DNA of 64,000 nt from Salpingoeca rosetta (Eukaryota > Protista > Choanoflagellata), in assembly GCA_033442325.1 (NCBI GenBank), contig JAWQFM010000029.1:710847-774846 (forward strand), given 5' to 3'. A program made the position numbers and the translations under genes. The notes beneath the pieces are model-generated. The model was not told the DNA's origin and made no database searches. It saw nothing but the letters and a program-made list of their open reading frames with translations. Positions 3,714 through 27,408 of the stretch are shown piece by piece (the stretch's first letter is position 1; every line of letters begins with the position of its first letter).

Positions 3714-3770
<57 letters not shown>

Positions 3771-3851
3771 TGTGTGTGTCTGTTTCTGTCCGTCTGTGCG
3801 TTTTCAGATGTTGCGTATGCGATGTGCTGCGTGACTCGCTGCCACATTCAC

Positions 3852-3927
<76 letters not shown>

Positions 3928-4071
3928 GAGTTGGAGGATCACACGATTGTGTATGGGCCGCGAAACGAAACGCGCGTTGACCCCGTTCACATTCAGCCAG
4001 AAACATTCAAGGAGGAACTGAAGTTGTTGCAGGAATCGTTGGGAAAGTACCATCCCATGATACAGCCATGA
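2882..4071 (+). CDS. DCTN6: Dynactin subunit 6 (p27), left-handed beta-helix; a middle exon appears to be missing from this assembly
   Basis: Exons 2882-2998 (MDQLTIHPTAVVCRGAVLKGNVTIGPGTVVHPTATIVAE), 3301-3365 (GDTAIDIGRDNMIEEQTVL), 3524-3588 (MMIIGDNNVFEIGA) and 3928-4071 (ELEDHTIVYGP...LKLLQESLGKYHPMIQP*), with GT-AG boundaries. Confidence 0.88.
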
Positions 4072-5039: not shown

Positions 5040-5243
5040 TATGGAGAATGTGAAGAAGGGATTGGAACGTAAAGATGATGTAACATATGTGCGCGCCACG
5101 CAGTGGACAGAAGGGTTGGGGTGGGGGTTCCAGACGAGTGATGGTGATGACAGAAGCAACTAGTTTGGAGTAGCGAATACAATGCGATGAGAATGAACAG
5201 AGGGTACAATTACACACACACACACACACACGCACACGCACAC

Positions 5244-5300
<57 letters not shown>

Positions 5301-5349
5301 CACACACACACGCACAAGTTCTTGCCACACAAACATTTCGGTTCTCACG

Positions 5350-5756
5350 TTGAGCGAGCGCCGTTCGGTCGTCTTGGCTGACCGGCTGCAACTGCATGAG
5401 GACAGGAGTGCCATCAACAACGACTGACAGCGTGCATGATGAGACAGCATTCACAGCCGGTGCCGATGGTGTTGATGATGACAATGGCGACGATGACAGT
5501 GGCCGCGCTGCTGCTGTTGCGTCGCTGGTGATGCGCACAGCTGATGCTGTTGTAGCGGTACTGCCGTCGTGCCTGCGACTCCCCTCCACTTCCTCATCCC
5601 CATCATCATCATCATCATCGTCGTCATCATCACCATCATGTTCATCAGCATCGTGATCACGATGAATGAGTTCACTCTCGTCCTCGCGTGGAATTGTGCG
5701 CCCGTGACGGCGAAGGTGCAGCGTCACATTCACACCTGGCACACGAAATGCGCATC

Positions 5757-5788
<32 letters not shown>

Positions 5789-5825
5789 GCGTGCGTGTGC
5801 GTGCGTGTGCGTGCGTGCGTGTGTG

Positions 5826-5868
<43 letters not shown>

Positions 5869-7047
5869 CGTAAGACTACGCGCAACAGTCGAGTACGGCG
5901 GTGAATGGCGGTTGCGGCGTTAAAACCGTCAGTTCCATTCAACGTTCTCCTTGATCATTCACGCCTCCTTCTCCCTCAAACACACACACACACACACATC
6001 ATCATCATCATCACCACCACCACCACCACCACCACCATGAGTTCGAACGTACAGAACTGTGTTGCGTCGTCGTCGTGTGTGGTGGAGGCAATGAGATCTC
6101 CATCAACGGTTGCGCACAGGTAGCGCCCATTGCACTCCAACCGGCACCACGGCGTGCCTGCAGGCACAAATGGCGTGAGCAGGAATTGGTGGCGAGGTGG
6201 TGGTGGTGGTGGTGGTGGTGGTGGTGGTGGTGGGAAGAGACAACGTGGGCAAGTGTGAAACGTATGGAGAGCCAGACAAAAACACCACTCACTTATGGTA
6301 AGCAAACGCGGAACACAGAATTACACACACACACACATATATATATATATAAGTCCACGTGAGTGGCCCAACCTTGCTCTGGTTTGATAGTGAAACGCGT
6401 GGCCTGATCCATCGTCGTCGTGTTAGTGACGCGCACGTGTGCGTCATCAGGCATGTGCAGGTACTTGCCGCTGTGGAACACGCTGTTGACATGTGATTTG
6501 GGGGCGGGGAAGAGCGGGGGACAAGGTGAGTGTGCTCATCAGAAGCAAGCAACACAACACGCTTTCGCTACAAACACCAATGCCCACAAGCTCAAAACAC
6601 ACACACACACATGCACATGCACATACGCACACACATACGCACACACATACGCACACACATACGCACACACATACACATACACACATACACATACACATGC
6701 ACATACACACATGATCTTGCTGTCTTCTGTGCAGTGGATGAACACACGCGCGAGAACACCGGCGCCGCCGCGAGCGTCAACCCATCCCTGCATGCACGCA
6801 TACAACAACAGGAAAACAACGGAAAAGGAGAATGAATGAATGAATATCGGCAGGCATTGGTGGGGACCGTACAAGTGTGAAATCTGACGGAAACACAAGC
6901 GTGCGGTGAGCTCAATATGCGGTTAAGAATACACTATCAATGCGCAATGTAAAGTTCATGCCAATACGCGCGCGCGTACACACTCCAAAACACGCACGCA
7001 TACACACACACACATACACACACACATACACACACACACGCACACAC

Positions 7048-7098
<51 letters not shown>

Positions 7099-7427
7099 AC
7101 CACACTCACGCGTCTGTTGTTGACGCGAAGCGGGGCTTCCGTCAGTTTGCTGTACACGCGCCCAAGGCACGCGCGCATGCCTGCAGGCAAGCTTGGTCGG
7201 GACAAAATATCGTGTCGCAGCTCACCACCCCGGAGGTTGATGGCGTGCACGGGCATTTGCAGCAGCCGCAGCTGCGACGGTGTGCGAACAAACGCCGTGT
7301 CGTAGTCTGAACGAATGCGGAAGAACAAAAGGAGGAAGAGGGAGGGGCGTGGAAGGGCATTATCGTGTGATGACGGAAAAACCAGGATGAAGGAAGATGG
7401 TACTCTGTGCGTGTGTGTGTGTGTGTG

Positions 7428-7490
<63 letters not shown>

Positions 7491-8147
7491 TGGTNNNNNN
7501 NNNNNNNNNNNNNNNNNNNNNNNNNNNNNNNNNNNNNNNNNNNNNNNNNNNNNNNNNNNNNNNNNNNNNNNNNNNNNNNNNNNNNNNNNNNNNNNNNNNN
7601 NNNNNNNNNNNNNNNNNNNNNNNNNNNNNNNNNNNNNNNNNNNNNNNNNNNNNNNNNNNNNNNNNNNNNNNNNNNNNNNNNNNNNNNNNNNNNNNNNNNN
7701 NNNNNNNNNNNNNNNNNNNNNNNNNNNNNNNNNNNNNNNNNGACAGGGTTGAGGGGTGAGCGACTGCGATGGAAGCATTGGCAGATATGGCGCATTGTCA
7801 ACACCATGTCGACACCATGTTATTCATAGAACACTTCAAACAGACATCAAACGGTCATAAGACAGCACCATCATGGCAACATACAACACACAGATGCACA
7901 CACACGCACAAGCTACGTCTTCCTCACTCTCTCCGTCGTTGTCCTGGTCAAACTCCTCAATCATCGCCTTAAGCTCATCATCGGGAATGTCCTCTCCCAA
8001 TTCCCTGTTTGTGACGCAAAGCAACGCGCAGCCGCGGTATGAGGAAAGTTGGGGAGGTGAATGTATCTCGTGGCATAAGCAAACGACACAGACGAGCAGC
8101 CACTCTCTTGCGGAAATACACACCACACTCACTCGCACACACACACA

Positions 8148-8220
<73 letters not shown>

Positions 8221-8788
8221 TAGCGAAGAAGACCGCTGGCCTCACCATGCGTGCATGGCGTCTGGTTTGATGAGGAGGGTGACGCGTGTACAGCGGCGCG
8301 GGCGATCACAGTCCGCACTGACGCCCTGATGGTGCCGATGATGATCGTGATGGTAAGAAGGTGTTGGAGCAAGATGCAGTGCTCTCGACCTTTCGCAGCC
8401 CCACACATGACACATGTAACGCAAACGCGCATAAGCAGCATGCACAACGCACATACACCACACACGGCAACTTCGGCCCATTCGTACGTGTCGCTTGGAG
8501 TATGCGAGAAACTTTGCTGATTCGTTGGAGAGGAGAAAGCACTTGACAACACGCATGGTGCCAACATCATCACTGCCACCTCGAACAATGTCCGAATACG
8601 TGCGTGTGTGCACTGTGTCGCGTGTGAGCGGCTCGCTCGCTGTCACCAGATCGTCCCACGACAGCACGTGCTCAAACTCTGCAAGTGTTTGAAGTGTTGC
8701 GATGTTTGTATGTTTGAGTTGGTGCATGTGTGCGTGTGTGTGTTGTTGCACGATTGAGGCAAAGGAAAACGCGTGTCAAACCGAGTCA

Positions 8789-8819
<31 letters not shown>

Positions 8820-10214
8820 CGGTGTGTCAGGAAACTTTAGACAAACGAGACACCATGTCAAACGCATTAGAATAGACGAGCGATGTGCAATCATCACACC
8901 GAACAACCATCCCACCTTGCTGTCTGCCAGTCCACATACTTCGCTGACGGCGGTGCGCACGCGCGCGTGTGTGTCCGTGTGCGCGTCGGGAAATGTGGCA
9001 GCGATTTCCTGCACGCGGACGCGTGTTCTTCGTCGCAAGCTCAAGCTAATGCAATGTGTGGAGGAGGGTCATGTGGTGCTGGTTATCAGTCCAAGTGAAA
9101 AGCGAGGGTGGACAGGCACGGGCACGCAGAGGTAACATGCCCGTGTACACATCTCACGGTGGAAATTACGCAATGCAACACAGCACACACCCACACATAC
9201 ACAACACACGCGCGCGCCCACACCCACACATGCAAACACACACACACACACACATGAGCTCACACAGCACACACAACACACATAACACAGCACAACGCAC
9301 ACACACGTACACACCACACCTCGTGCACGCGTGCTTTGAGAGCGCTGATTTCGTCCTTGTTGTCGCGTGTGTGCTGTGACATGGTTTGCATCCTCGCCTC
9401 CAGACGCACACGCAGGTCGTCAATCTGCTGCTTGATGGCGGCGTCGGTGACGTTGTTGTTGAGGGAGATGAGCGCCCGCACACGTCGCACCTCCACCCCA
9501 TCCCGCACCTCAACCTCGCTCCCTTCCCCGCCATCCAGCGCAATGCCCAGCAGAATCTGGCTTGGCTGCGGGTGCGCGCTCGCCTGGGCAACACCTGCGG
9601 GCCACTCAGCACTGGCAGCACTGGCGTGATCAGCGTTGCCTGCATGTACGGTGGTGCTGGTGATGGTGGGCATGCGAGACGGCTGCTTGCTCTTGCTGCT
9701 GTTCTTGCTGGTGCTCGAGCTGTTGCTGTTGTTGCGACGCCTACCATTGGCGCTGCCAGTACTAGCCTTCCTCTGCTTGCCACCATCATTGTCGCCGTGG
9801 CTGGTGGTGCTGCTGCTTCGCTCTTTCTTGGCGCTCGTGCTCCGTCGCCTGCTGCTCTGCCGATCGCCAGGAGTGACAGCGGGGGTGGCGTGGGCGCCGA
9901 CGTGCTGCTTTGAACTCGCAGCATCGCCCTCGGGTGCTTCAGTCGACTCGACACGTGACACCTGCGTTGATAAGTACGACACGGAGTAGTGGTTGTCAAG
10001 CACCGCGCTCTCCTCAACTTCAATCATCACCCATTCGTCGTCATCATCATCGTCGCCGTCGTCGTCACCATCATTCTTGGGCGCAGTTGCATCTGCCTCA
10101 GCAGTTGACGCAACGGTGCCTGCTTTCGTTACCGATGCAGCTGTCTTGTTACCATCACGATGATCAGAAGAAGCCGTGTCACCACCGCCATCCCCACCAC
10201 TCTCATCACCGAAC

Positions 10215-10302
<88 letters not shown>

Positions 10303-13242
10303 AGTCGTCGTGGATGCTGAGCAGTTCAAACTCTGCGGCTGCGTCCTCCAGCGAGACCGCATACGGCCCCGTGTACAGCAGATCCCCCGTCTTGACAGGA
10401 CCCCCGACCTTCGTCTCGATTGTGCTGTGTGCCATTCATCGCACGTGCCGTTGCGTACATGGCGTGGGATTTGGGTGTCAGTGGGCGAGATTGTGTGTGT
10501 GTGTGTGCGTGTGTGCGTGTGTGCGTGAGTGAGTGAGTGTGCACGGGTACATGAGTGTGCATGTGTGCATGTGTGCATGTGTGCTGTATCATTGAGCCCC
10601 GGTACCCTGCACAGCGTGATTGGTGGTAACAACCACGTCTCGTCGCCCGTTCACGACATTCAACAACACTGAGTGGTGTCTGCAGCAAATACATGCACAC
10701 CACCACCACCACCACCACCACCACCACCACCACCACCACCACCACCACCAAGCTGTGTCCACCAGTGCGTGACATAGACTCACCCGAACATGCACACGAG
10801 GTCGATGTGCTGCACAGGGAGTGACTCCACTTCCCGGCGATTGGCGCTGGCATGCCGGTGTGTGGTGGAGTGATGGTGTGGTGAGGTCGAAGGTGAGGTG
10901 TTGTCAGGAAGCACAACTTCACACATGCACGCACGACATGGCAATAGCATTTCACACACACGCGCGCACACAAGCCGATGGAGAAGAATGCAACAGTATG
11001 CGGTAATGCGTACATGGTGTGTGCTGATCTGCTGATGACACCGCACACGACAGCACCGGCAACGTTCTCGCGGCGCAACCGCTCAATGACCAGACGCCCG
11101 CCCGCAGCCGAGAACAGACCAACAACATCGCCCTCCTCAAATGACCTGCATAACACACACACACATGGGCGGGTGTATGCGGGTGCGTACTTTGGGTTGA
11201 ACGACACAAGTTCACACCTGAATGCCTTGCAATGATAATGTGTGCACCATACACACATACACACGAGCACATACACGAGCACACACACGAGCACAGCAAC
11301 AACAGCACCACCAAGAAACAAAGAAGACACATCTGGGTGTGCGCGTACTCTGATGCGCGGAGTTTGGGGAAGAGGTAGGCAATGTCGGCACCCGTGCTGG
11401 TGAGATCGGCCCCGCACTGAAAGCACTTGCCTGTGCAGATGAGGATGGGTGAGGCAGTGGTGGTGTTGGTGATTGGTGAACCCGAATACACACACACACA
11501 CACATACACACACACAATGACAAGAACACACACGGCACAGGGGCAAGAAACACAAGCGCAAGTGCACGCACTAGCACGACAGCCAACTCACAGCTGACGT
11601 TGAAGACGACTTGGAGCATGCCGCAGGAGGGGCAGTTTGCCATCCACACCTCTATCGACAGCAGTTCGTCAAGTGATGCGTGTGATGGCACTGGTGATGG
11701 TATGATGGGTGCGTCGGGTGACATGCCACTTGTGGTCGTGGTTGTGGCTGGCGAGAGCCCGCTTGTTGCTGCCGACGATGGTGACAGCCCTGCCCCAGGT
11801 GATGATGCGTACGATGGCTGCGGTGGGTGGGCTGGCAAGCCCTCTGAAAGCGTGTGTGCGAGCGAAGGTGGTGATTCTTGTGGCGACAGCGGTGAGAGGT
11901 GCTGTTCTTGCCACTGTTGCTGTTGTTGATGGAACTGTGGCTGTTGTTGCTGTTGTTGTTGGAACTGTGGCTGTTGTTGCTGCTGTTGTTGGAACTGCTG
12001 CTGTTGTTGGAACTGTGGCTGTTGTTGGATGGATGCTGGTGGGCTGAACGCCAGACCAAACGCGTGCGCACCGTCCATCTCCTCCTGCAGCTGCGGGTCG
12101 TGGAGACTGCCAAAGTTGATCATGTCTGCACCGACAAGCTGCATGCCGGCCTGTGGCGACGGCGTTGCGTCCATCGATGACGACGAGTGTCCAGATGGCG
12201 AGCCAACAACTGACCATTGGAGAGGAGGGGGAGTTGGGTTGTGTGGTTGAGTGCGTGTGCGGTAGTTGATTGTGTGAGTGTTGTTGAGTGTACGTGAGAT
12301 GTTGGCGCTATGATTTTTGAGTGCAAGAGCGTAACAGCGGCACTGATCAAGTGGTGAGGCGGAACCCTCTCGCAGTCAATCAACATCACACATGATCAAC
12401 ATGACATCACCAGCCCTGTACACCAATGCCATTGTCGCGACGAGCACTGCCATGAACATGCGCACAGCCGCAATCACGCCATCACTCAATCACGCACCAC
12501 CACGATTGCCACCGCACCTGGAGGGATGTCAAATATGTCTGACCATCCTCGTGGCACCGAGGCGCCTGCCGTCGTCGTCAGCATCTCGGGGTCGTTTGCA
12601 CCTCCGCCCAGCATGTTCGGGACCGAACCGCCCATCCCACCGTCAGGTGGCGGCTGGCGTCCTTGCTGGTGGTGGTCGGGGAGAGTGTATGGCTGTGTCG
12701 TGTGCGCGCGTCCGTGTTTCTGCGCGCGTGTGCGCGAGTGGCGAATCGGTCCGGTCCTCCGCGGGCTCCGAGCACTGGACGACGACGACGACGACAATGA
12801 AGACGGCGATGCTATTAATGCCGAAAAAGGAGGGGGGGGGAAGGGTGTGATCACGGGTGCATGCGTGAGTATGTGTGTGTGTGCATTTGTGGTTATTGTG
12901 TTTGTGTGTGTGTGTGTGCGCATTGTGTGTATTGTGTTTGTGTGTGTGTGTGCGTGCGCACATGTGAAGGTGAAGTCGCGTTGCTTTTCTCAACAATTCT
13001 GTTGTCACGTGACGAACTACGTTGCTTACCGCCGTGCGACACTGATTGCGGCAGATGTTGTTGTTGGGGCTGGTGGTGCTGCAATGCCGCTTGCAGATAC
13101 GCGTCACCTGCAGGTGACGCGCAAGCAATGTGTTGTTATAGTCGTCGATGGCGGGTGTGAAAGGGAGGCAACCAAGCTCAGGAGGGAACACGCACATGCC
13201 TTATCAACAGCACAAAGAAATGAGCACAGAGGGCACACACAC

Positions 13243-13281
<39 letters not shown>

Positions 13282-14255
13282 ACTGCACCTTGGTCTTTGA
13301 GGAGAGCCGCAAGGTCTGCCAGGTCTCCGGGCTCACACGTGTCCGCATCCATGCTGCCATTGACATAGACCGCAAACCCCATCCTCCGGCACTCGCGCAC
13401 GAGTATCTGAAACACCTCAGCCTCGTGTTGGGGCGGCACAGCATAGTGATATGGATGCACGCACACGCGGTCTCTCTTCGCAGCACCATTTCTCCTTTGG
13501 ATGTTGTGTGAGTGAGTAAGTGAGTGAGTGAGTGAGTGAGTGAGTGAGTAAGTGAGTGAGTGAGTGAGTGTGTGTGTGTATGTGTGAGTGAGTGAGTGAG
13601 TGAGTGAGTGATTGAGTGATTGAGTGATTGAGTGAACTTTGCAAGCAAACTGTTCTGCAAGGGCAACCATTCCTGCGCCAAGCCGTGCATGCTTACTTGA
13701 TGCCGTAATCGCAGCTGTCGATGAGCTTCCACGTGGCTACAAGAAGCTCGTCGGTGATGGGAAACCGGTGGCCCAACAGCTCCTTGAAAAAAGCGTGTGT
13801 AGACGTCCGTCGCTTGGAGTCTACAACCACATGGTACAAAGTGCATGCAGCGAAGAGCGGAAATGTGTTACGACAGCGCCTCAGCTAGTCAGCCGGGCAT
13901 TCGTTGATGCAACAGGCAAGCAAGACACAATGTCAAAGGCAGTAGCCAACTCCACAGGCACACCCACAATGAGGACAACCATGAGCGCAACACAAACACA
14001 AGCACAGGCGTGGTGTCTTGGCAACGTGCCTTTAGTGCTGTTGAAGCGACCTCGCGTGTGAGTGCAGTTGTTCTTTGGGCAAGTGGGGCACGCAGCTTTG
14101 CATTCCACAAAGAAGTGGTGCTCGGCCACCTGGAACAAGTCCATGGCATCGTTCAATGTAGTGCACACAAGTGCCTGAGCAAATTTGACGTCTCGCTGCT
14201 GGGCTTCTTTCCACAGAGCCCAATTCAGGCTCAGTCCCCCAAGTTGAACACACAT
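5350..14255 (-). CDS. Paralog A: MH1-like Zn domain, Q-rich region, C4 Zn knuckle, Peptidase_G2-like chaperone domain, coiled coil and FGF/fascin-like beta-trefoil (3' end uncertain)
   Basis: Exons 14255-14030, 13820-13697 and 13494-13289 give ...CPTCPKNNCTH...RRTSTHAFFKELLGHRFP...SCDYGIK...VCVHPYHY. Downstream exons give WMANCPSC, CFQCGADLTSTGADIAYLFPK, FEEGDVVGLF...CGVISRSA, VCMFG, KVGGPVKTGDLLYTG, LLGIALDGG...NNNVTDAAIKQQIDDL and GRYLCATVDGDLIAS. These are collinear with paralog B. Confidence 0.75.
7928..8004 (-). other. Isolated centrin-3/Cdc31-like exon (EF-hand 4 region) inside an intron of paralog A
   Basis: cag|...|gtgag-bounded 77-nt exon encoding ELGEDIPDDELKAMIEEFDQDNDGE, close to centrin-3 ELGENMSDEELRAMIEEFDKDGDGE. 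No other centrin exons are recognisable nearby. Confidence 0.7.
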
Positions 14256-14719
14256 CTTGGCGCACAACAACGTGCTTCCACTTCTTCTGCGGCTTCTTCT
14301 GCTTCTGCTTGCAAAGCCAACGACTTGCGTGGAGCGTCGGCCACTTTGGAAAATGATGCTGGCTGCACAAGCGCTTGCCTGTCTCTTGTGTTGGCCAGTA
14401 TCGACGATCACCTGCGGTGGTGGTGGTGGTGGTGGTGGTGGTGGTGATGCTGCAGGGCAGTGCTGCTGATGGTGGTGGTCGTCGGGTGTTCGTGTTTCGG
14501 TGCGAGGGTGCGTGCGCGTGTTGTTGACCTTGTCTGCTCTGGTTCGGTGGTCCTTTCCCCTTCTCTCCTTTTATCCTTTTGCTTCTTGCTTTGCTTTGTC
14601 GCTTGTTTGGGTTGTGGAAAATTCATGAATGTCAGCGCTAATCGTACACTCGACGATGACACAACTGGGTGTGTGGTGCGTGCGTGTGCACGCGCGCTGT
14701 TGTTGGTGTTATGTTCCAG

Positions 14720-14812
<93 letters not shown>

Positions 14813-15308
14813 CAACGACCAAAGAAAGCAACAGCCCACCCTGCCTTGCTTGCCTAATCAACTCAGACCAATCAGATCACACATTCGATTTAAATCTCGT
14901 GCATGAGAGCAAAAGAAGGGGGTCAGCAACAGCACTGCTTATATCAACGAAGATTTGTGAAAACGCAAGGAAGCCAAAGACAAAACGTGTGGTGGGGTAA
15001 ACAGGGACAACAAAAAGGAGGTGAAGCCGAACAATAAGAAGGAAGAATTCAAAGGAAAGCCAAAAGCTAAGGTGAGATTCACGTGTCACGTGTCACGTGA
15101 TGTGATGCGATGCGTGCGCGCGCGCGCGTGTGTGTGTGTGTGTGACACATGGCAACACAACACAACACCAATGTCGTGACAAAAGCAGCATCCAGGAAAC
15201 AAGGAAATCAAGATTTTGGCATGGCGTACTGTAACATAACGTCACGCCTGCGTTATTATCACCATCAGCATCAACAGTCGCAGCATCATCCATCATCCAT
15301 CTCACGTG

Positions 15309-18300
15309 CTACACGAGGAAGATTTGCGAATCCCGGTGCTGTATGGTTGCATGTGTGGCGGCGGCGGCGGTGGTGGTGGCTCCCTGCTCTGCCTGCTGCT
15401 CTGACGCGTCCTGAAGGAGAACAGCATGGCTAATGCGCTGTAGTTCGTCCTCCGCGCTGTTGTATCCCCACACCGTCAGGCTGCTCGTATCCAACCATGG
15501 TTGCCAGGGCTGCCGGCTCTCATCCTCACCACCATCATAATTCACGTCGTCGCGACTGCCGCCACGACTGCCACCACGGTGATCACGGCCGTCACGGCTG
15601 CTGTGGTTGCCGCTGTCGCTGCGCGCGTGCGTGTGCACACATGCGAAGAACTCAAAGGGAAGCTCGTCGCTGGGAACGGGATGGCTGCTGCGGGCAACAT
15701 ACACACACAGCGGCTTGGAGCGGCCTGGTGGCGGGGAGAGGGGAGGGGAATGGGAGAGGGCGAGAAGTTGTAGGGGAAGGTGAGGTGAGAATGCGGGGCA
15801 AAGGTGGGGTGGGGGTGCGATAGAATCACTGTGGGTGTGCACACGACGCGACAATCACCGACACGCGCAAAGGGCACACACAAAAGCAAACAAAACATGA
15901 ACGGAATCACTGTGGGTGTGCACACGACGCGACAATCACCGACACGCACAAAGGGCACACACAAAAGCAAACAAAACATGAACACACACACAAACACACA
16001 CACACACACATAAACACACACACACACACACAAAAGCAAACAAAACATGAACATGCACACACACGCACACACAAGCAACACAATACACGCGCACACGCAC
16101 CAATTTTGATGGCAAAGTTTGCTGTCTCGCACTGAACGACGACAGGGCGGCTGGCGTGCACGAAGCACAGCGCAATGCGGTCGCACTGCTGGTGCGATGA
16201 TGATGACGACAACAACGACGACGACGATGATGGTGTTGGCACCATGGTGAAGTCCGTAGTTGCATTGCCTTGCACTTCAACTCTTCGGCCTTCATCATCG
16301 CCACCATCACTGTCAATATCGCCTTCACTGTCATCATCACCATCACCATCACCATCATCACCACCGCGACCACGAGCACGGCGGTGCGGCTTTGATTGTT
16401 TACGTTGCTGTTGTTCTTCTCTCGCCAACACACCAGCGCCCCCACTACGCTCATCGCCAACAGTCCCTGCATCAACAGCACCAGTCGCGCTGCTGCTGCT
16501 GCCGCTCATAACACTTGACAACGCGCCCGCTGTTTGGCTTCGCCTCGCCGTCTTCCCACCACCACCACCGCCGCCGCTGTTGCTGCTGTTGCTGCTTCGC
16601 CGTCGACTACGCCGACCACCGCTGCTGCCGCTGCCGTCGGCGTCGCCGTGCAAGTCGACATCAACCACGTCGTCCAGCTCCCTCAGCTCGTCGGGGGTGC
16701 CTGCGATTGTGTGTTCGCGGCGAAGAGGGCTCATTCCCCGCCGCTTTCGTCTCCGTGCCCGGGACGGGCGGTCAACGCCGCTGTCGGTACCAGCATTATC
16801 GTCGTCGTCGTCGTCGTCGTCATTGGTGGCGTTGGTGTTGGTGCTGGCGTTGGGGATGCTCTTGTCGCGGCTGTTGTTGCTGTTGTTCGCGCGCTCGTTC
16901 CGCTTGCTGGCGGTTGCGCCGTTGGCAGCGGTGAGCACTTCCTCAAACGCACCGTCGCCGTCCGTGTCATAGTGGTCGGTGTCTGTGATATCGCCGCTGC
17001 TTGCCTCGTCCACGTCAGAGAGTATCGACGCATCAGACTCGTCGGCATCCGTCTTCGCATGGTGTGCCAGCTGCTCTCCAATGTCCGCCACTGCACGGTG
17101 CAGTGTCAATTGCCGGGGTTGCGGTGGCGGTGGTGTTGTGGCGTGAGGACACATGAAACACATTCGATCAGTAGCAGCGATCACAGAGACGCTCGTGGTC
17201 GTATACACACACACACACACATACAACAACACACAAACATGCACACACGCGCAGACAAACGAACCGAAGATGCAAGCAGGCGTGATGGTGGTGGAGACGC
17301 GTGGGTTGCCGTCCTCATCAAAGCAGAGGTAGTGCTGTCCGCACCGCAGCGCAACACCATCTGTAATTTGGGGGGGGGAGGTGGAGGTTGGGATGGGATG
17401 GGGTGAGTACAGATACACCATTCAGGCGTGGTGATGTTGTGACAAAGGCCACCGTTGCCTGTACACAACACACAACGCACACACATGCACGCGACGCAAA
17501 ACACGCACCTTCTGTCGAGATCCATTCAAAGGCGGTTGATGCGTCCGTGGCGGTGGTGAAGACAGGGAGACCGTCCTTCAGGCCAATGTACCCGTCGGCG
17601 TGCAGCAGTCTGCAAACAAATCACGGACAAGGGGCGGTGTCGTGTGGTGTCATGTGGTGTGTTGTGATGGGTTGTGATGTGGTGTGATGTGGTGTGAGGT
17701 TCGGGGTGACTTTTGGATTGTGGGGTGCGGGAAGAATAATCACCAGGAGCGCAACACACACACACACACAGTCTTTCCAGGCGCGTGTGCAGGGTAGTGT
17801 TGCAGACCTGACAAGAGGGCGGCTGATGACTTCGAATGCGAGAAGTGACTGCAGCCCGTGGCCTTTGCAATCCACCTGTGCACAGGTGTCGTGTCGTGTT
17901 GTGCAGAGCAGAGGCGAGACGAGGTGAGTGGACAAGGGAGATGCAGAGTGTGGGGCAACAGAATCACACATGCACGCACACAAGGGTATGCAAACACACA
18001 CAGGATAAATGCACACACACACACATATACGTCCATGACACAAATGAGCGCGACTGCGACCGCACCTTGCCGCCAAAGACGCGCACGGCCTCCTGCGTGG
18101 TCTGGGCATACAGGCGGCACAGACACACGCGCTTGTCTGCAAAGGCATTGAGGTTGAGGACGCGCTGCTTCTCGCTGCGGGTGAGGTGCAGGTGGCGGCC
18201 GGGGCGCAGGTGGTGCTCAACGTCATCAAACCGCGACACGAGCATGTGCCGCTCTGAGGAGGTGGACGCCATGGTGGTTGGTGATGGTGGTGGTGAGGAG

Positions 18301-18381
18301 GAGGAGGCGCGGATGTGTGTGTGTGTGTGTGTGTTTGCATGTGTGTGTGTATGTGTGCACGTGTGCACGTGTGCACATATG

Positions 18382-18419
<38 letters not shown>

Positions 18420-19226
18420 AAGGCGAGCATAAGCGAAGGTGAAGAGAGACACGAGCATGGCAGTCGATGGGTTGCGTACTTGTAGTTGACTGATGTGAGG
18501 CTACGTCCTGGCGAATCTCTGCACAGCAACACATGCAAGCAGACAATCACATGATGCAAAGGGTGAGGAGAAACCCCGAATACGCACAACGCACACGCAC
18601 GCGACCAACACAAACAACGCTGCCCGAAGCAAACGTTTTGAAGTCATGCAGCCACGCACACGCACACGTACACGCGCACATGCACACACACACGTACACG
18701 CGCACATGCACACACACGCGCGCGCAAACGCAAGCGCACCGAAGCAGGCGCGCTTGTCGAATGTGGACTTTCGCCTGTAGTTCGGGTACGGCCGCCCGCT
18801 GGCAGAAACAGCCAGGTGCCGTCCGCCGCGCGTGAACGAGAAGTAGTTGGTCGCTGGTGGCGTCGTGACGCGGGCAGTGGGGTGTAAGGAGGATCGACAC
18901 GAGAGGGATGGATGTGTGTGTGTGTGCGCGCGCGTATCAGAACGAACGTCAGGTTCACAATGGCACGATTCAAAAGAGTCACACGCCATACACCACCACC
19001 ACCACCACCACCACCACCACCACTCGTGCTGGCAACATACCGACTTCCTGGATGGAGAACCACGGCAGGTCCTCCAGCGACGCCACGCGCACAAACCGCG
19101 GCTGCCCGCTCGCGTCCAGCGTCAGCGCACGCGCCCCCTGGAATGGTTTGACGATGCTGTGGCGTACGGGCGGGGAGGGGGAAGTAATGTGAAGATGTGG
19201 GGGAGAGGGAGTGCGTGGGCGAACGA

Positions 19227-19270
<44 letters not shown>

Positions 19271-21702
19271 ATACACATGCACGTGAGCGTGTGTAAGTGT
19301 GAGAGGAGAGAACAGAAGAGGACTGGCCGAGACCACAAGGATTGCAAGTGTACAACGAGCAAACACTCGAGCAACCAGTCGAGCACGATTCAACTTACGC
19401 CACGCGCTGGTCGCTGCCGCAGAGAAGAACAACACGCGTGTATGTCCCGTACTGTCCAGTGAATGTCACCCGCTGCAAGGCACACACACACAATGTGGCG
19501 ACGAGTGCATGATATGAGAGCGTGTGAGTACTGGGGGTGAACAGCCAAACACACCTACAAACACAGACATGTCGCTGCAGGAATGCCACGATACAACCGT
19601 CCCAACACAAGCGCACACGCATCCAAGCACACGCGCAAAAGCACGAATGCACAATCACAAACGCACACAATTACACCATACACCACACACACACACACAA
19701 ACGCAAAATCACGCACCGTTGTCTCTGGCATGAAGCGAAGCATGCGTTGCGATGAAAGGGAGACGATGAAGCACCACATGGCCGGCAGGTCGCGGAGTGT
19801 TGGCTTGCGGAACAGCCGCAGCCGCGCCAGTTTGCGCGCCGGCTGCGCATGGAGCAGCAGCCCGCCCGTCGACGGTATCACGCGCACAGAGTTGGAACCT
19901 GACGTTGGGAAGGAGAGAGGGGGAAGGAGGGGGAGGAGGGGGACGCGAGCAGTGTTGTGTGGTATGGTGTGTGGGGTGTGATATGGTGTGTGGGGTGTGG
20001 TATGGTGTGTGGGGTGTGAGGGCCGTGCAAGGGTGGCAGTACCACATTCGCTATGTTTGCGTGACTTGGGTGTTTGTGCAATGGTATGCGGAGTTGTGCT
20101 GGTGAATAGGGACACAAGCCTTCCCCCAAAACACATTAAGCACGTGATGAGCAAGAGCCCGGTGCGGGACTGACTTGTGACGGAGGGATGACGATGAAGC
20201 GATGGATGGCGCACCTGCTGTGCCCGCTCAACCTGACACACACGCACACACAGGACCATTGTGATCAGGAAAGAGCGGTGCCAAGTGCGAACAAACAACA
20301 AACCGCAACAACTGCACCATGCAAGCGCTTAACACCACACACACATACACATACACATACACATACATAAACAAACACCCCCTGCCGGTACCTTCTTGAG
20401 GCGCTGTAGGATATTCTCCTGTGTGCGCACAATGCCGTCCACGCGCTGCTTGAGTTGCGAGTTGAGGTCGTCAATCTGCTGCTTGATGGCGGCGTCGGTG
20501 ACGTTGTTGTTGAGGGAGATGAGCGCCCGCACACGTCGCACCTCCACCCCATCCCGCACCTCAACCTCGCTGCCTTCCCCGCCATCCAGCGCAATGCCCA
20601 GCAGAATCTGTTTGGACCACGGCGAGGTGCGCATGGCCTGGGCAACACCTGCGGGCCATGCATCCGCTGACGACAGCGACGTCAACACGCCCCGCTTGCG
20701 AGGTGACACGCCATCACCAACGCCACTTCCAACACCACCATCAGCAACATCGGCGTCGTTGCCGGGGGTGCTGCTGCGGTTGGCTGCTTGCTGCTGGGTC
20801 GACACCCTGCCATGCTGGGGTGCCAGCGGCGCCGGGGAGGTGGAGGGGGCGGATGTGGACGCGGACATCGACGATGGCGGTGAGGATGAGGACGGCTTGG
20901 TGGCAGCATCCTCCCGGTTGGTGCCGGTGTTGGTGCCGGTGTCGGTGTTGGTGTTGTTGCTGTTGCTGTTGCTGTCAGCTGCAACATCGGCCACGGCTAT
21001 CTCCTCGTATCCAAACGCTGACGGCGGCGCCCCAGTGTCCGATGACACCGCCTCCTTCTGCGTCAGCTGGTGCTGCGTGTCTGCTTGCTGTGTTTGCTGG
21101 TAGCGAGGCGAGGTTGGGCTGCTTGCAAGCACGAATGTCGTGCCTTGGGTGGTCACGTTGTCATACTCGCCGCTGCCGCGCCCGCCATCAAACCGGTGGC
21201 CGGCAACCCGTTCCAGCTGGCGCCGTTTCAGTTCATCCCGAGCGGAGCCTCCACCAACATCGCCGTCGTTGTCATCATCTTCGCTGTCATCATCGTCGTT
21301 GTCGCTGCTGCACACCACCTCGTCGTGTCCGCTGCGTGTCAGGACGGGCTGCTTTGTGCGTGCTGCCGTCTGCGTGTGTGTGTTTGTGTCCGTGTCGGGA
21401 CGGCCACCGCCGTTCACGAGCGAGGGCGTGGCCGACGACGACGACAGCGCCGGTGGCGAGCGGCTGTTGCCTGCAGGCATCTCGCCCACAGCTGCACCGG
21501 ACGTGGCGTGGGAGAGCGGCGTGGACGTGACAGAGCCATCGTCCTCGTCAGTCACGTCGTCATCGTTATCGTACGGCCCCGTGTACAGCAAATCGCCCGT
21601 CTTCACCGGACCGCCGACAAGCACATGCACGATGCTGCCGTGCGGTGGCGGTGGTGGTGGAGACACGGGTGTGAGTGAGGGGGTGGGTGGGTGGTTGCGT
21701 TA

Positions 21703-21784
<82 letters not shown>

Positions 21785-22303
21785 AGTTGTGCACAAGGAG
21801 GGACAGGAGCAATGTGCTGGTTTGACAGGCGTGAAGGAGTGGCGGAGGAACTCACCCATACATGCAGACCGTTTCCACGTCAAAGGTGTTGCGCACTTTC
21901 GCGTTGTTTGCATTTGCACTGCACAAACACGTGTGCAAGCAGCAACGGACAGGTGAGAAAGCAGTGGCAAGTGGAGTGGGGGCAGTTGTCGTGATGCACA
22001 ACAGCGCAGCACTTTGATGAAAGCAAGTAAGAACACGTCACAGAGGCAACCAATGGTGTTAACGAGCAGTTGCTCCCTCAACAAAACCGAACCAAAACCA
22101 CCATCACCACAATGACCACCACCACAAACACAACCACCCTTGGCTGCGTACATGGTGTGTGCTGAGCGGGTGATGACGCCGCACACGACGGCGTCGGCGA
22201 CATTATCGTGGCGAATCCGCTCCACAGCCAGACCGCCGCCCGCAGCCGCAAACAGCCCAACGACCACACCTTCCTCAAACCGCCTGCACAGCCACATGTG
22301 TGT

Positions 22304-22339
<36 letters not shown>

Positions 22340-22731
22340 ATTGAGCGTTAGCAGCGAGTCACACCAAGCAGAACGTGGCCAGCTCACACAAGTGAATTGC
22401 TACTTTGCCAGAGACACATGCACCACCACCACCGCCACATGCAGCAACAGCAAACAGCAAACAGCCAGCATCCAACACCAAACAGTAGTGCGTACTCGTA
22501 TGCGCAGATCTTGGGGAAGAGATAGGCAATGTCGGCGCCCGGCCGCGGTGCCGGCAGCGGCATGTTGCACTGGAAGCACAGCTGCTCAACCTCTGTGTAA
22601 GGGGGAAGGAGGATGGGGAAAGGGTGTGGTGATCGTACGCGGGGGGTGGGATGATGGTGAGTCATGAAAGGAGGAAAGAAGGGGGGGAGAGCGGAGCTGT
22701 TAAAATTTCAACGCGACCAAATGCCAACACA

Positions 22732-22819
<88 letters not shown>

Positions 22820-23012
22820 TTCCTGTCCAAAGTGCATCGTACGTGTTTTTGCAATGGCCTGTGGGAGGTGACAGGAAGGACAGTGTCCCCAGAAAAAGTC
22901 TTCACACTGCAGATCGTCTGGGAAGAGCGCACTCGCATTGCCGGACAACGCAGCCACTTCCCGGTTCATTAGCCCGTACGCCTGCCGCGGTGCGTCATTG
23001 CAAGCGTGATTT

Positions 23013-23050
<38 letters not shown>

Positions 23051-24275
23051 CGTGCGTGTGTGTGTGTGTATGTGTGTATGTGTGTGTGTGTGGTGAGCAT
23101 GTGCTCTTGCTGCTGCTGTTGCTGTTGGGACGGTGTCGACGAGTGACAAGGGCGGCTCACGCCACGTTGCGTGCCACAATGGCAAAATTCAACAACGGCA
23201 AACACAACACGTGTGATCACGAGTCGCGCAGACAAGATACGCACACAACAGCGCTGTGTGTGACAGTGCTGCTGGACTGTACCGTGAAGTTGTCGTCCTC
23301 TGTGTCCATGGATCGCGGCAACAGCACAATCCCAGCGCCGCTCTCGTTCGGCTGAAGGCGACACCATGAATAGTTTGTTGGGCAAGCAGCGCGTGTTGGT
23401 GGTGGGCATGAGTGTGAGCGTGGTGAGGTCGCATTCAGGACGTGCTGTCGTACGCGGCGAGTGATCCAAGTAATGCATCGCCTTCACGGCAGCGCATGCA
23501 CACACATACACGAACCCACATACACGAACGTAACGCACATGCATACATGCACACACACAGCACGCAGTTCACAGAGTACACTCACCGACTGCGCGGTTGT
23601 GTTGGAGAAGAGGGTCATGCCAGCTGCGGACGGGGTGAATCAGGCAATGCACATGCAGCATGGTGAGGCGGCACTTGCTTGGGGACAGCACGCGAAATCA
23701 GACGCAAGGCAGGAAGGTACACAAAGCAGGAACAAGAAACACATACACACACGCGCACGCACGCACACACACTCTCTCCGCCAGTCTTCTCAACGCACAA
23801 TGCTCAGTGAAGGATGCGAGGATGTGTGTTGGAGTGGACTCCTCGAGGGTGAATCCGGTGTTGTGGTACAGCGTCTGGGACACGCGCGGGGTGCGTTGCA
23901 ACCGCCGCCCCTGCCGCCAACTGCGCTCGCTGCCATCGCCATCGTCGCCGCCCTCCAGCATGGCCGTGGATGTCGTGGCCTGTGCTCCCGAGTCATCGTC
24001 TGCTGCAGTCGTCATCACGTTGGAAGCGTCAGCATCGTAGCCGCTGCCATAACCCTCGTTGAACAGCGTGTCAGCGCCAAAGTCTGGCGGCTCCATGCTA
24101 GCGCTTGCAGAGCTGTTGTCTTCCTGTCCCAGGAAGCGCACGCCGCCCCGCATCGATTGCGCAACGTCATACCCTGATTGCATCACGCCAACTCCTTCTT
24201 CTTGCTGCTGATATTGTTGTTGTTGCTGCTGATATTGTTGTTGTTGCTGCTGATATTGTTGTTGTTGCTGCTGAT

Positions 24276-24338
<63 letters not shown>

Positions 24339-25365
24339 GCTGCTGATCGTGTGCATGTGGCGGAGATGTTCGCTCCGGCGTTGCGGCACCATCGTCCTCC
24401 GCACCGGGCGGTGGAAGCTCAAACAGGTCCTGATCCAGCATGTGCAGTACTCCAGCATCACCAGCCACGTCGCTCGCAGGCGTGCCCATACCCGTGGTTG
24501 TGGCTGTGGTGGTGGTGGTGGCGTTGGCGGTTGGCTGCACAGACCATGGCGATGATGATGATGATGATGATAGTGATGGCGGTGGCGCAGCGGTGGTGTC
24601 GACGTGCAAACCGCTGCTGACGAAGCCACCGTTGCGGCCAAGATGTGCCGTCTGGCCAAGCAGGTGCGCAGGCTGCTGGTGTTGCTGCTGTTGCTGCTGC
24701 TGGTGTTGTTGCTGGTGTTGTTGCTGGTGTTGCTGGTGTTGCTGGTGGTGTTGGTGGTGATGGTGGTTGTGATGGCCGGCTGAGCTGTTTGTGGCTGCGC
24801 TCTGCTCGCTGTACACGGAGCCTGTGGCGCTGTCAGCGGGCGACCCCTGCTCTCGCATCAGCGACAGCACATGCCCCGGCGCTTGCACCACCCCGCGCAG
24901 GCTCTCGCTCTGCGCAGGCGGCTGGTACGGCTGCTGCTGCTGCTGATACTGTTGCTGTTGCTGTTGTTGTTGCTGTTGCTGGAGCAGCAGCTGCTGGTAT
25001 TTCTGCTGACGCTGCAGAATGTCAGACACGTGCTCTCCGCCACCGTCGGCTGATGGCGGGGACGGCACAGACTCGCCCTCCTCCTTGTGCCACTCGTGTA
25101 CAGGCCCCTGCTGCTGCAGTTGTTGCTGTTCTTGGAACTGTACTTGCTCCTGGTTGCTGTTGGCGGAAAGGGGCGGCGAGTGCTGCAAATTCGCCGTCCC
25201 GTAGCCAATAGTCGATGACAGTGCTGCGATGTTGTCGTCGCCCTGCTCGCACAACGGCCGCACAAACTTGTTGGCTGCACGCAGAGTGACGCAAGAGCGA
25301 GGAAAGAAGGAGAAAGAAGATGAGCAAGGGGAGGAACAGGGGGTGAGGCTGCAATCGCAGACCTG

Positions 25366-25435
<70 letters not shown>

Positions 25436-26542
25436 TGTGTGTGTGTCTTCAACACGCTAAAGTTGGTGCTGATCCGTAGGTAGTGGCAGGACTCTTATAA
25501 TAGACCAAACATCTCCTGTAGTCTATTTATGGTAAAAGAATACATGCGTATTGCTATTCCTCCGACTTGTGTAGGAGATACCTGCTGCTTTAATGATTAG
25601 TTATTCCGTCAGTTTATGCGGTCTAGAAAAGTTGCCGTCACCTTTAGATCAGTGTTGTCAATCGTCTCGTACCGAGACTACCTTATCCTCGCTTGCTTAA
25701 CCCTGGGTTCCGCTCGTTTCCGTCAGAGCGGGTGAGTACAACAGTCGGCACTCAACACTTTACAGAAGTATCCTTCTCACGAGAAGCAGTCGCATAAAGG
25801 GACTTCACGTGGATGTGCGTGTGTGTCATGTGTGTGTGTCATGCACGTGTCATGCACGAGCCATGCGCGTGAGAGCAACTTACAAGCGTCAACAAGGGCC
25901 ATGCAGAGCTTGTAGTACATGCCGGCCTCGTAAGGAGTGTGCTCAATCTGCACCGCACGACACGATTGGAATGTGTTTGTTTTGGAGGGAGGGAGGAGCA
26001 GCAACCGTCGTGGGAAACATCATGCATGAGGCACCATGCGGTGTGTTGACGCACACACATGCGTAGCAGCAGCAACAGCAGCAGTAGCACCAGGGCATGT
26101 GGGGGACAGACAAGCACGCACACACAAGCACAGACAGACATACACACCCACACCCACACATACCCACACATACACACACACACACACATGCAAACACACA
26201 CACGCCCGCACACATCAAATACACAAGCAACACAAATCAACAGCAACAACAACAACAACTGACGGTGAATCCTGCGCGGGAGCTCTCCTTGACGAGGAGG
26301 TCGAAGAAGAGGCGCTCGTCCTCCGGGTCCACGTGGTAGTGGTGCGGGTTGATGCAGATGGGCGCCAGCCCGTTGGGGCCCGGCGGGCCTTTGCCCTGTC
26401 CGTTGCCGCTGTTGGTGGTAGTGGTGGTGGCATGGTGTGGCGTAAGGATCAACGGTGCGGGAACGGAAGCGGTCGAGTGGCATTGAACACACCATGCGCG
26501 CGCACGCGCGCGCACGCACGCACGCACACACACACACACAGG

Positions 26543-26580
<38 letters not shown>

Positions 26581-27151
26581 GAATGCCGTATTCGCAGGAG
26601 ATGAGGCGGCGCCAGGAGTTGTGAAGGAGGTCGTCCGTGATGGGATACCACAGCCCAAGATGCACGCGGAAGAAGGCGTGCGTCGACACACGCCGCGTCT
26701 TACCCCCAGCTGACGGCGGTGGCGGTGATGGTGGGAGTGAACATGGGAGTGAGTGATGATGTGGTGAATATGAGTTCAAGCAGGACGCGCGGCAGTGGCA
26801 GTGCAAACGGCTGAGGACACGTGTGAGCGTTTCCATCACACCCACATGGACATGCTCACACACACGTTCACACACGCGTGTACGATTGTTTGGGGCTCAA
26901 CGCACATGTGCTGGTGTACAGGCTGGAGATGTGTGTGCAGTAGTTCTTGGGGCATTCCTTGCACTTGCCGCGGCTAATCTCTGGGAAGAAGTGTTCCCTG
27001 AATAAAGATTACAAATAAGGCGCGCAATGAGTGCCTGATAAGTGGGGCGATGCCTTGCGTTGTACACATGACCGCACACAAACACACACACACAGACACG
27101 CACACACGCACACACGCACACGCACACACGCACACGCACACGCACACACAA

Positions 27152-27184
<33 letters not shown>

Positions 27185-27240
27185 CACACACAAACCAAAC
27201 ACGCACAAACCAAACACGCACAAACACACACAAACACACA

Positions 27241-27284
<44 letters not shown>

Positions 27285-27408
27285 GCATGGGGAACATGTC
27301 GAGTGCCTCTGGCCATGATGAAGCCTGCAGGGCCTTGAGACAGCGACGGTCGCGGCCAATAAACTCGGCAAGGTTGGACGGGTCAAACCCCGTGATAATC
27401 ACAGACAT
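15309..27408 (-). CDS. Paralog B: MH1-like Zn domain, poly-Q region, C4 Zn knuckle, Peptidase_G2-like domain, coiled coil and about 2 FGF/fascin-like beta-trefoils
   Basis: Exons 27408-27284, 26997-~26907, ~26710-26580 and ~26409-26265 give MSVIITG...KCKECPKNYCTH...RRVSTHAFF...SCEYGIR...ICINPHHY. A large Q-rich exon spans ~25275-23800. Later exons give WGHCPSC, CFQCNMPLPAPRPGADIAYLFPK, FEEGVVVGLF...CGVITRSA, VCMYG, LVGGPVKTGDLLYTG, a coiled coil and GQHYLCFDEDGNPRVSTTITPACIF. Likely stop at 15309. Confidence 0.78.
15825..15982. repeat. Tandem duplication of an 80-bp unit in an intron of paralog B
   Basis: aatcactgtgggtgtgcacacgacgcgacaatcaccgacacgc...aaaacatgaac occurs twice, with a partial third tail. 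Confidence 0.8.

Follow-up and report, generated by a model that had tools for sequence, protein, structure and literature searches.

Two genes, A and B, lie in tandem on the minus strand of the window analysed, 64,000 nucleotides of the choanoflagellate Salpingoeca rosetta (contig JAWQFM010000029.1). In window positions, gene A runs from 14255 to ~5350 and gene B from 27408 to ~15907. A genome-wide search gave a copy number of two in the 55-Mb genome, namely these genes, and a genome search with an out-of-frame peptide likewise returned these two loci only.

The model of gene B (15907..27408, predicted splicing) has 17 exons and a 1881-codon uninterrupted open reading frame (ORF). Exons 1-9 are 27408-27284, 26997-26906, 26709-26580, 26408-26260, 25274-23773, 22981-22843, 22592-22496, 22283-22152 and 21918-21856; exons 10-17 are 21634-20379, 19898-19778, 19156-19041, 18853-18740, 18253-18025, 17609-17509, 17360-17265 and 17090-15907. 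All 16 introns are GT..AG. At the junction from the coiled coil to exon 11 the donor is non-conserved, lying 12 bases beyond the one used by gene A and by an outside homolog, P0001, and the last ~90 codons are translated TG repeat and doubtful.

The model of gene A starts at the ATG and extends through the coiled-coil exon (9320..14255); it has nine exons with predicted splicing and 908 codons without a stop: 14255-14006, 13820-13697, 13494-13289, 12661-12518, 12209-11592, 11430-11349, 11145-11014, 10846-10784 and 10424-9320. A coding-potential scan added C-terminal pieces, unjoined, in 5350..8679 (8679-8494, 7307-7116, 6520-6377, 6137-6040 and an acidic tail from 5688 down); these resemble residues 1229-1530 of gene B weakly and in collinear order. 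The same part of the contig holds an assembly gap (7495-7741) and, adjoining it, 478 bases (7742-8219) that include an EF-hand exon. One end of this piece directly abuts the gap and the other is a TG microsatellite; the piece matches a section of a centrin-like gene on contig C7 at 98.95% identity and is probably misplaced. Because it copies the centrin-like gene, the letters either side of the gap may not be continuous and gene A cannot be read through 7495-8219; the gap-continuity test failed for this gene. At their C-termini, which are uncertain, both proteins pass into translated TG repeat.

The two genes have a common exon order and matching splice phases, which agree at all junctions examined, that is, wherever the phases of both genes are known. 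Open segments of B searched against A with tblastn gave eight collinear conserved exons (E 4e-6 to 3e-15). After splicing, the MH1-like part is 40% identical between the copies (E 2e-31), the central module 55% (E 7e-43) and the block preceding the coiled coil 85%. The C-terminal ‘trefoil’ parts are collinear but weakly similar (E 0.05 to 10), and the read sequence of A lacks an equivalent of ~130 codons of B (exons 12, 13 and part of 14). The initial annotation had described two adjacent minus-strand paralogs with the same order exon by exon. That observation is confirmed: both copies carry all the quoted motifs on the minus strand, at 11634 (CPSC), 11425 (CFQC), 11389 (ADIAY), 11141 (FEEG), 10797 (VCMFG), 10405 (GGPVK) and 9550 (LGIAL) in gene A, and at 22882 (CPSC), 22578 (CFQC), 22536 (ADIAY), 22279 (FEEG), 21869 (VCMYG), 21615 (GGPVK) and 20601 (LGIAL) in gene B. 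It read each copy as a single multi-exon gene, which is plausible given a continuous ORF with GT-AG introns from the MH1-like part through the C-terminal repeats. Eight presumed RNA runs contain 48-56% of the words sampled from 9200-14600, against an exon share of 50% in the model, an agreement that is circumstantial.

The N-terminus of each protein is a putative MH1-like (Smad-type) DNA-binding domain, an assignment that is weak but specific. In gene B it is encoded by exons 1-4 (26260..27408, residues 1-165) and contains H..CxxC..C-T-H, STHAFF, SCEYGI and ICINPHHY. The sole Pfam match was MH1 (PF03165), both for the N-terminus of B (E 0.016, 15.9 bits, profile positions 28-100 of 103) and for residues 1-167 of A (E 0.015, 16 bits); both scores lie below the Pfam cut-off of 25 bits and, coming from paralogs, are not independent tests. 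In the PDB, 14 of the 15 matches to a profile of gene B exon 4 were Smad MH1 chains, and the sole match to spliced A was the Smad MH1 chain 6h3r, aligned over WKLIDSCDYGIK..RVCVHPYHY. These matches fall on the zinc-ligand motif CxY...VCVNPYHY, and the two Cys and the His aligned in 6h3r are residues that coordinate zinc in Smad MH1. Exons 1-3 alone gave no Smad match, nor did spliced B in a single-sequence search of the PDB. The MH1-like N-terminus proposed in the initial annotation is to this extent weakly borne out.

A low-complexity exon follows in gene B (23773..25274; 500 residues, 22% Gln), and then the central module (21571..22981), which is split over exons 6-10 and comprises the CPSC..CFQC knuckle, GADIAYLFPK, FEEGVVVGLF, GVITRSAHT, VCMYG and VGGPVKTGDLLYTGPY. 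Between A and B, GADIAYLFPK shows three synonymous and no non-synonymous differences, and VGGPVKTGDLLYTGPY six and none; for the identical motifs of the module pN is 0 and pS ~0.43. Since identical peptides have changed only synonymously, these are constrained coding exons, not chance ORFs. The central module is a strongly conserved domain of unknown family, under purifying selection; Pfam, PHROGs and the PDB gave no family match to it above threshold.

At the end of exon 10 of gene B lie a conserved block, WPAGVAQA..LLGIALDGG..VRALISLNNNVTDAAIKQQIDDL, and after it a helix, a putative coiled coil (20379..20658). An AF2 model of this segment has a long, confidently predicted helix at residues 55-88 only (pLDDT ~80), and both block and splice position are conserved in P0001. 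Exons 11-16 (17265..19898) form a phase-consistent chain encoding ~260 residues with six G-x-[HY]-L-type units, a candidate double beta-trefoil. These units, of G-x-[HY]-[LI]-x-[LC] type, resemble those of FGF and fascin beta-trefoils; the difference is that the top Pfam match of the second half (the last three units), FGF, spans 30 residues at 14.3 bits (E 0.041), below the FGF cut-off of 24 bits, and that the first three units have no Pfam match. One sub-threshold match does not support the C-terminal beta-trefoils claimed earlier. Strong basic clusters, of RARRRKRR type, occur only at residues 1595 and 1645, in the C-terminal tail. No transmembrane helix was found in the protein, as the initial annotation had noted.

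Taken together, A and B are probably a pair of MH1-type transcription factors of a new architecture. The full proposal, whose chances we put at about even, is that they are old tandem duplicates of a single gene, each encoding a soluble, sequence-specific transcription factor of ~1,800 residues. The MH1-like (Smad/NFI-type) N-terminus would coordinate zinc and bind DNA, and the Gln-rich region, of 200-500 residues, would serve in activation or condensation. The central module would be lineage-specific and strongly constrained, made of a CxxC..CxxC knuckle, a beta-rich core of ~100 residues, an acidic disordered loop of ~300 residues and a block of ~65 residues ending in a helix, and would probably mediate self-association. 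The C-terminal repeats, possibly a double beta-trefoil, and the charged tail would probably serve in ligand or partner binding and nuclear import. We infer that each gene is transcribed as a single mRNA and that its product binds DNA, oligomerises and localises to the nucleus.

A different origin for the central core had been suggested, namely a Peptidase_G2 domain as in phi29 gp12. Of the two folds that the initial annotation expected profile searches to recover, MH1 came back weakly and G2 did not: neither Pfam nor PHROGs gave a match with the spliced cores, nor did the PDB with the core, and PF11962 had no match across the whole genome. A phi29-type G2 HMM built in this analysis scored ~3 bits on both cores, collinearly (empirical p ~0.001-0.006; equalled in 2-13 of 2000 shuffles and in 3 of 629 real-protein windows), and the two best exon-level hhalign matches fell on the expected columns, non-significantly; hhalign probabilities were 0.6-3.8%. 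An HMM from E217-type phage cement proteins gave no comparable signal. Four motif blocks of the cores are collinear with phi29 gp12 at similar spacing: D-x-A-x-x-F, E-x-G-x-x-V-x-L, G-V-I-S-x-[ST]-A and V-x-x-x-G-x-I-x-x-[KR]-[VI]-x-x-x-V-K-x-G. All this would fit a core derived from a Peptidase_G2-type tail-spike chaperone that has lost its catalytic Glu and now serves a transcription factor solely for trimerisation or folding. We consider this rather unlikely, given the failed searches and low hhalign probabilities; moreover, two paralogs are non-independent tests, many beta ‘hybrid’ barrels share G-x-V-K-x-G-D, the domain is internal rather than C-terminal, and there is no fibre or beta-helix upstream to be folded. 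A working version of the same domain, which would trimerise, cut itself near ADIAYLF and let an MH1 fragment enter the nucleus, with trefoils as tether or sensor, is very improbable. The order of DNA-binding domain, conserved module and helix recalls MYRF (PMC3742443, PMC3742440), and the scissile-motif Asp of G2 survives in GADIAY. The objections to G2 homology all apply here too, however, and a membrane anchor is absent. Because the G2 motif D-x-A-E-Y-F-E reads D-I-A-Y-L-F-P in both copies, the Glu that all sequences in our G2 alignment share is missing, replaced by Tyr. A released fragment would lose the strong NLS-like basic clusters, which are on the C-terminal side of the proposed cut. 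Genuine Peptidase_S74 domains were readily detected at three other loci of the genome by the same exon-level method. The MYRF-like release mechanism of the initial annotation is unsupported because no profile search recovered a phage self-cleaving chaperone; we saw no evidence of autoproteolysis, and with G2 not recovered and MH1 weak, trimerisation and conditional release are therefore speculation.

Two further readings question the gene model and the function. In the first, each model wrongly fuses two or three separate genes, which contribute the MH1-like exons, the central module and the C-terminal repeats and happen to be ordered alike in the two duplicates. In its favour are the weakly defined introns beside the Q-rich exons (985, 791 and 627 bases), the exon-11 donor of B and the break in gene A. 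It is improbable: in both copies the parts form one ORF with GT-AG introns only and conserved phases at comparable junctions, the entire arrangement went through the duplication together, neither an in-frame start with its own ATG nor a break of polyadenylation type shows between the parts, and the word share in the candidate RNA runs fits the joined model. Quite improbable, in turn, is a cytoplasmic scaffold or lectin-like protein whose Cys/His N-terminus is another zinc module or a relative of His-Me-finger nucleases. MH1 and those nucleases reportedly have a common fold, the MH1 score is below cut-off, the additional H..CxxC cluster is absent from Smads, and the C-terminus is trefoil-like. 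Against this, no Pfam family besides MH1 was reported, the PDB matches are Smad-specific, on zinc ligands with the C-x5-H spacing of VCVNPYH, and Q-rich regions are typically carried by activators.

Among known systems, MYRF and Dictyostelium MrfA (Ndt80 DNA-binding domain, Peptidase_S74 ICA domain and transmembrane helix) share with A and B the order of DNA-binding domain, linker and beta-rich module ending in a helix; in MYRF, too, the DNA-binding domain lies upstream of the conserved module (PMC3742443, PMC3742440). Unlike them, A and B have no Ndt80 domain, S74 match, triple-beta-helix stalk or transmembrane helix, and a Ser/Lys dyad is not assignable. The likeness to Peptidase_G2 (PF11962), the C-terminal autochaperone of the phi29 gp12 pre-neck appendage, lies in the short collinear motifs and the weak HMM signal; besides the Glu-to-Tyr change and the lack of database matches, A and B differ in missing the ~60 residues that separate the GVIS block of G2 from its VVGLLG block, in the inserted acidic loop, in the internal position of the module and in having no pectin-lyase beta-helix upstream. 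With the MH1 of Smads and NFI they share an N-terminal domain of ~130 residues, whose C..C..H motif SC[DE]YG...[VI]C[VI][NH]P[YH]HY aligns with Smad KAIENCEYAF..VCVNPYHY. They differ in the sub-threshold score, in 4-11-residue insertions between ligands 2 and 3, in the additional conserved cluster H-F-F..CxxCPKN.CTH and in the ~1,700 residues after the domain, with a module unseen in any Smad or NFI. Stand-alone MH1 proteins have been reported from choanoflagellates (Richter et al. 2018, eLife, PMC6040629; PMC6792448), without MH2 (PMC6040629), and in this A and B resemble them.

Genes A (14255 to about 5350) and B (27408 to about 15907, upstream of gene A) are best read as a tandem minus-strand pair of paralogous transcription-factor genes of the MH1 type, with a new architecture. 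They lie in GC-rich, intron-rich eukaryotic DNA from an assembly of 55.4 Mb in 68 contigs. The motifs that the initial annotation had reported in two copies were all found, on the minus strand, with the copies ~11 kb apart. A tblastn comparison of gene A with all open segments of gene B gave eight collinear conserved exons; at the DNA level only four exons can be aligned, and the introns cannot. Exactly these two copies are present in the genome.

Splice sites, read by hand, are GT..AG and of identical phase in A and B at every comparable junction. The predicted model of gene B starts with an ATG at 27408, has its stop near 15907 and joins 17 exons into a single open reading frame of 1881 codons; that of gene A, which also opens with an ATG (14255), comprises nine exons and 908 codons as far as 9320, where the coiled-coil exon ends. 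After splicing, the two are 40% identical in the N-terminal domain, 55% in the central module (the CPSC..CFQC knuckle and the GADIAYLFPK, FEEG, GVIS/T and VCM[FY]G blocks) and 85% in the block before the helix. We infer the joining of exons in both genes from sequence. Between 48 and 56% of the words sampled from 9200-14600 are present in eight runs, from two studies, that we guess to be RNA, and the exon model occupies ~50% of the same interval; this agreement is a circumstantial hint of splicing.

Divergence between the paralogs is biased toward synonymous change. Three synonymous and no non-synonymous differences separate the two copies of GADIAYLFPK, and six and none separate those of VGGPVKTGDLLYTGPY (pS ~0.43); in the FEEG exon pN is 0.16 and pS 0.42. 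Because of this bias we consider both genes functional and constrained. A stretch of 141 bases (9416-9556 in gene A, 20467-20607 in gene B; ILLGIAL..AIKQQIDD) differs at a single base, which, against a pS of ~0.43 in other conserved exons, indicates a recent gene-conversion tract.

Translated TG microsatellites (CVCVCV...) follow the acidic tails and precede the first stop, at 15907-16180 in gene B and 5002-5380 in gene A (minus strand), and the true 3′ ends of both genes probably involve one more splice. Coding-like segments on the plus strand at 3283-4023, for example ERDIVHAVLYSAENGSGTMMIIGDNNVFEIGAG, suggest that a further gene, transcribed oppositely to gene A, lies immediately downstream of it.

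Gene A is interrupted in its C-terminal part by an assembly gap at 7495-7741. Flush with the high side of the gap, a piece of 478 bases (7742-8219) shares 98.95% identity with another contig of this genome, C7, at ~1228848-1229325 (2349-2826 of the extracted locus L089), and contains one EF-hand exon, RELGEDIPDDELKAMIEEFDQDNDGE. On C7 that exon lies downstream of a centrin-type exon (minus strand, L089 3490-3672 and 2446-2799), so C7 holds a real centrin-like gene; the L089 locus itself terminates in a run of N (4491-5001). In the window the other end of the piece is a TG microsatellite. Most likely, 7742-8219 does not belong to gene A and was misplaced in the assembly. With such a piece at the gap, the continuity of gene A across it should not be assumed, and the read sequence of gene A has no counterpart of ~130 codons from exons 12 and 13 and part of exon 14 of gene B. 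Claims about the full architecture should therefore rest on gene B.

Smads bind DNA through their MH1 half, and an MH1-like domain at the N-terminus had been proposed for both genes. When the spliced N-termini were searched against Pfam, MH1 (PF03165) was the sole family reported for either: E 0.016, 15.9 bits, for gene B (profile positions 28-100 of 103) and E 0.015, 16 bits, for gene A. The gathering score of this family is 25 bits, so that neither gene is a member by threshold, and domain censuses based on gathering thresholds may have missed both. Single exons, searched against Pfam as open segments, gave nothing relevant, and PF03165 searched exon by exon against the genome gave no match at E up to 10. 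Against the PDB, a two-sequence profile of exon 4 returned 15 matches (E 0.16-1.3), all but one of them Smad MH1 domains, aligned at KKDEVCVNPYHY. Spliced gene A returned one match, the Smad MH1 chain 6h3r (E 0.22), in which WKLIDSCDYGIK....RDRVCVHPYHYA of gene A is aligned with LKAIENCEYAFN....KKDEVCVNPYHYQ of the Smad; spliced gene B by itself matched no Smad, and profiles of MH1 exon 3 and of gene A exon 1/2 found nothing relevant.

The 6h3r alignment covers two Cys and a His that we take to be zinc-coordinating residues of Smad MH1; in Smad3 the zinc ligands are Cys-Cys-Cys-His (C64, C109, C121 and H126). Of these, the last three have aligned counterparts in the two genes, where S-C-[DE]-Y and [VI]-C-[VI]-x-P-[YH]-H-Y correspond to NCEYAF..VCVNPYHY of Smad chains. 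For the first ligand the candidate is the Cys of N-x-C-T-H, placed by eye and outside every alignment. In both paralogs the MH1-like core is preceded by a conserved cluster, H-F-F..C-x2-C-P-K-N-x-C-T-H (14060-14120 and 26930-26990, minus strand); nothing in the Smad alignments examined corresponds to this cluster, and it may form a second zinc site. The sole Pfam family and the Smad matches in the PDB favour the MH1-like assignment, and its PF03165 score falls short; taken together, we think it probable that the N-terminal domain is a true MH1 homolog. MH1 without MH2 has been reported in choanoflagellates (Richter et al. 2018, PMC6040629; Lopez-Escardo et al. 2019, PMC6792448), and the origin of MH1 has been placed before animals, in MH2-less proteins (PMC6040629, PMC6792448). 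The supplements of PMC6040629 list neither MH1 nor Peptidase_G2.

Gln makes up 22% of a 500-residue exon of gene B, and a ~300-residue loop rich in acidic residues, Ser and Thr splits the central module. An AF2 model of a contiguous block of 89 residues left the conserved block uncertain and gave the next 34 residues as a confident helix. The C-terminal ~260 residues show, by eye, six repeat units of the G-x-[HY]-L type, which the initial annotation took for beta-trefoils. The last three (gene B ~1345-1480) have FGF (PF00167) as their top Pfam match (E 0.041, 14.3 bits, cut-off 24), and the first three (~1229-1370) matched nothing in Pfam.

The central module seems to be restricted to one lineage. 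When exon 10 was searched exhaustively, without a profile, against 1.8 billion representatives, one relative emerged, a 342-residue ORF on a 1100-base metagenome contig (ENA ERZ17097148, NODE_1510899; our P0001, locus L086). It is an unspliced genomic exon with the helix and the WPRGVAQA..LLGIVL..VRALISLNNNVTDAAIKQQID block, and its donor falls at the codon used in A and B. The conserved block had no relative in a scan of JGI metagenomes.

This module had been proposed as a Peptidase_G2-like phage chaperone (PF11962, the phi29 gp12 type) in a self-cleaving, MYRF-like system, and neither proposal was borne out. In Pfam, the core of gene A (the spliced, beta-rich part of the module) had no match and that of gene B no Peptidase_G2 match; PHROGs matched neither core, and the PDB held nothing relevant to core A (E up to 10 for all searches of core A). 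PF11962 found nothing in the whole genome while its Bacillus subtilis control was positive, and pairwise comparison of phi29 gp12 with the spliced cores also found nothing. A profile of the FEEG exon had no relevant PDB match, and this exon in an ESM Atlas feature search drew methyltransferase clusters at 0.82, the level of chance. What speaks for Peptidase_G2 comes from HMMs built from phi29 gp12 and 200 relatives: the phi29-type HMM gave cores A and B 2-3 bits, a score reached by only 2-13 of 2000 shuffles and three of 629 windows of real proteins, and it aligned the GVIS and V-x-x-x-G-x-I..V-K-x-G-D blocks collinearly. Alignments by hhalign fell at the expected columns, with P 0.011-0.09 and probabilities below 4%. 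We treat these similarities as a lead and not as a finding. At three invariant columns of the Peptidase_G2 alignment, D53, E56 and E59, both paralogs have D, Y and P (in GADIAYLFP); of the catalytic Asp and Glu of D-x-A-E-Y-F-E, the Asp is kept and the invariant Glu is Tyr in both copies. That the module is a much-diverged, catalytically dead tail-spike chaperone of the Peptidase_G2 type, captured by a choanoflagellate and fused to an MH1 domain, is in our judgement doubtful, and a phage-chaperone origin in all its forms is possible at a low probability.

MYRF-like self-cleavage and release are very unlikely. Peptidase_S74 (PF13884), the MYRF-type chaperone, had no match in the window, nor in exon 10 of either gene, and no transmembrane anchor follows the proposed cleavage module. 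The absence of a transmembrane helix had been noted at the outset, and indeed no segment qualifies: within credible sequence the Kyte-Doolittle mean over 19 residues peaks at 1.52, inside the conserved core, and the only hydrophobic part is the terminal TG-repeat translation. Strong basic clusters (RARRRKRR and RRSRRR) occur in the C-terminal tail only, on the wrong side of the proposed cut for a released nuclear fragment. The same exon-level method found Peptidase_S74 at three loci elsewhere in the genome, C26:204967-205158 (E 5.9e-14), C7:45578-45769 (E 3.2e-12) and C6:1886223-1886655 (E 0.0027), which shows that genuine phage-type chaperone domains are detectable here when present; these loci are candidates for true MYRF-like genes of the organism.

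Two other identities for the module were set aside. Phage_cement (PF22758) matched core B (E 0.032, 14.8 bits, cut-off 27) and did not match core A; an HMM of 120 E217-gp24 relatives carried no signal, with 186-297 of 2000 shuffles scoring as high, and genome searches gave no support. A Hint/intein reading of the C-F-Q-C-G start was dropped, no Hint family appearing at E up to 10. On contig C25, 104924-105052 (minus strand, locus L087) weakly resembles Phage_cement_2 at the exon level (PF09956; E 0.73, 15.7 bits), probably by chance.

We know of no characterised pre-animal, MH2-less MH1 protein, and genes A and B would permit a direct test of pre-Smad MH1 binding and regulation; Salpingoeca rosetta can be transfected and edited. 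The central module, with no recognisable family and no non-synonymous motif change over an old duplication, is a defined target for structure determination.

In the Peptidase_G2 proteins that we collected the domain is preceded by Pectate_lyase_3 (PF12708), whereas the core of genes A and B follows a Q-rich low-complexity exon and the zinc knuckle; Peptidase_G2 is C-terminal, behind a trimeric beta-helix or fibre whose folding it assists, whereas the domain of gene B is internal, with ~1,000 residues following it and nothing fibre-like before it. If the module were phage-derived, the capture of assembly domains from phages would be a recurrent event among eukaryotic transcription factors: beside MYRF, a trimerising phage chaperone would have been recruited a second time, independently, and in a relative of animals that is genetically tractable and has genuine loci of the Peptidase_S74 type as well.
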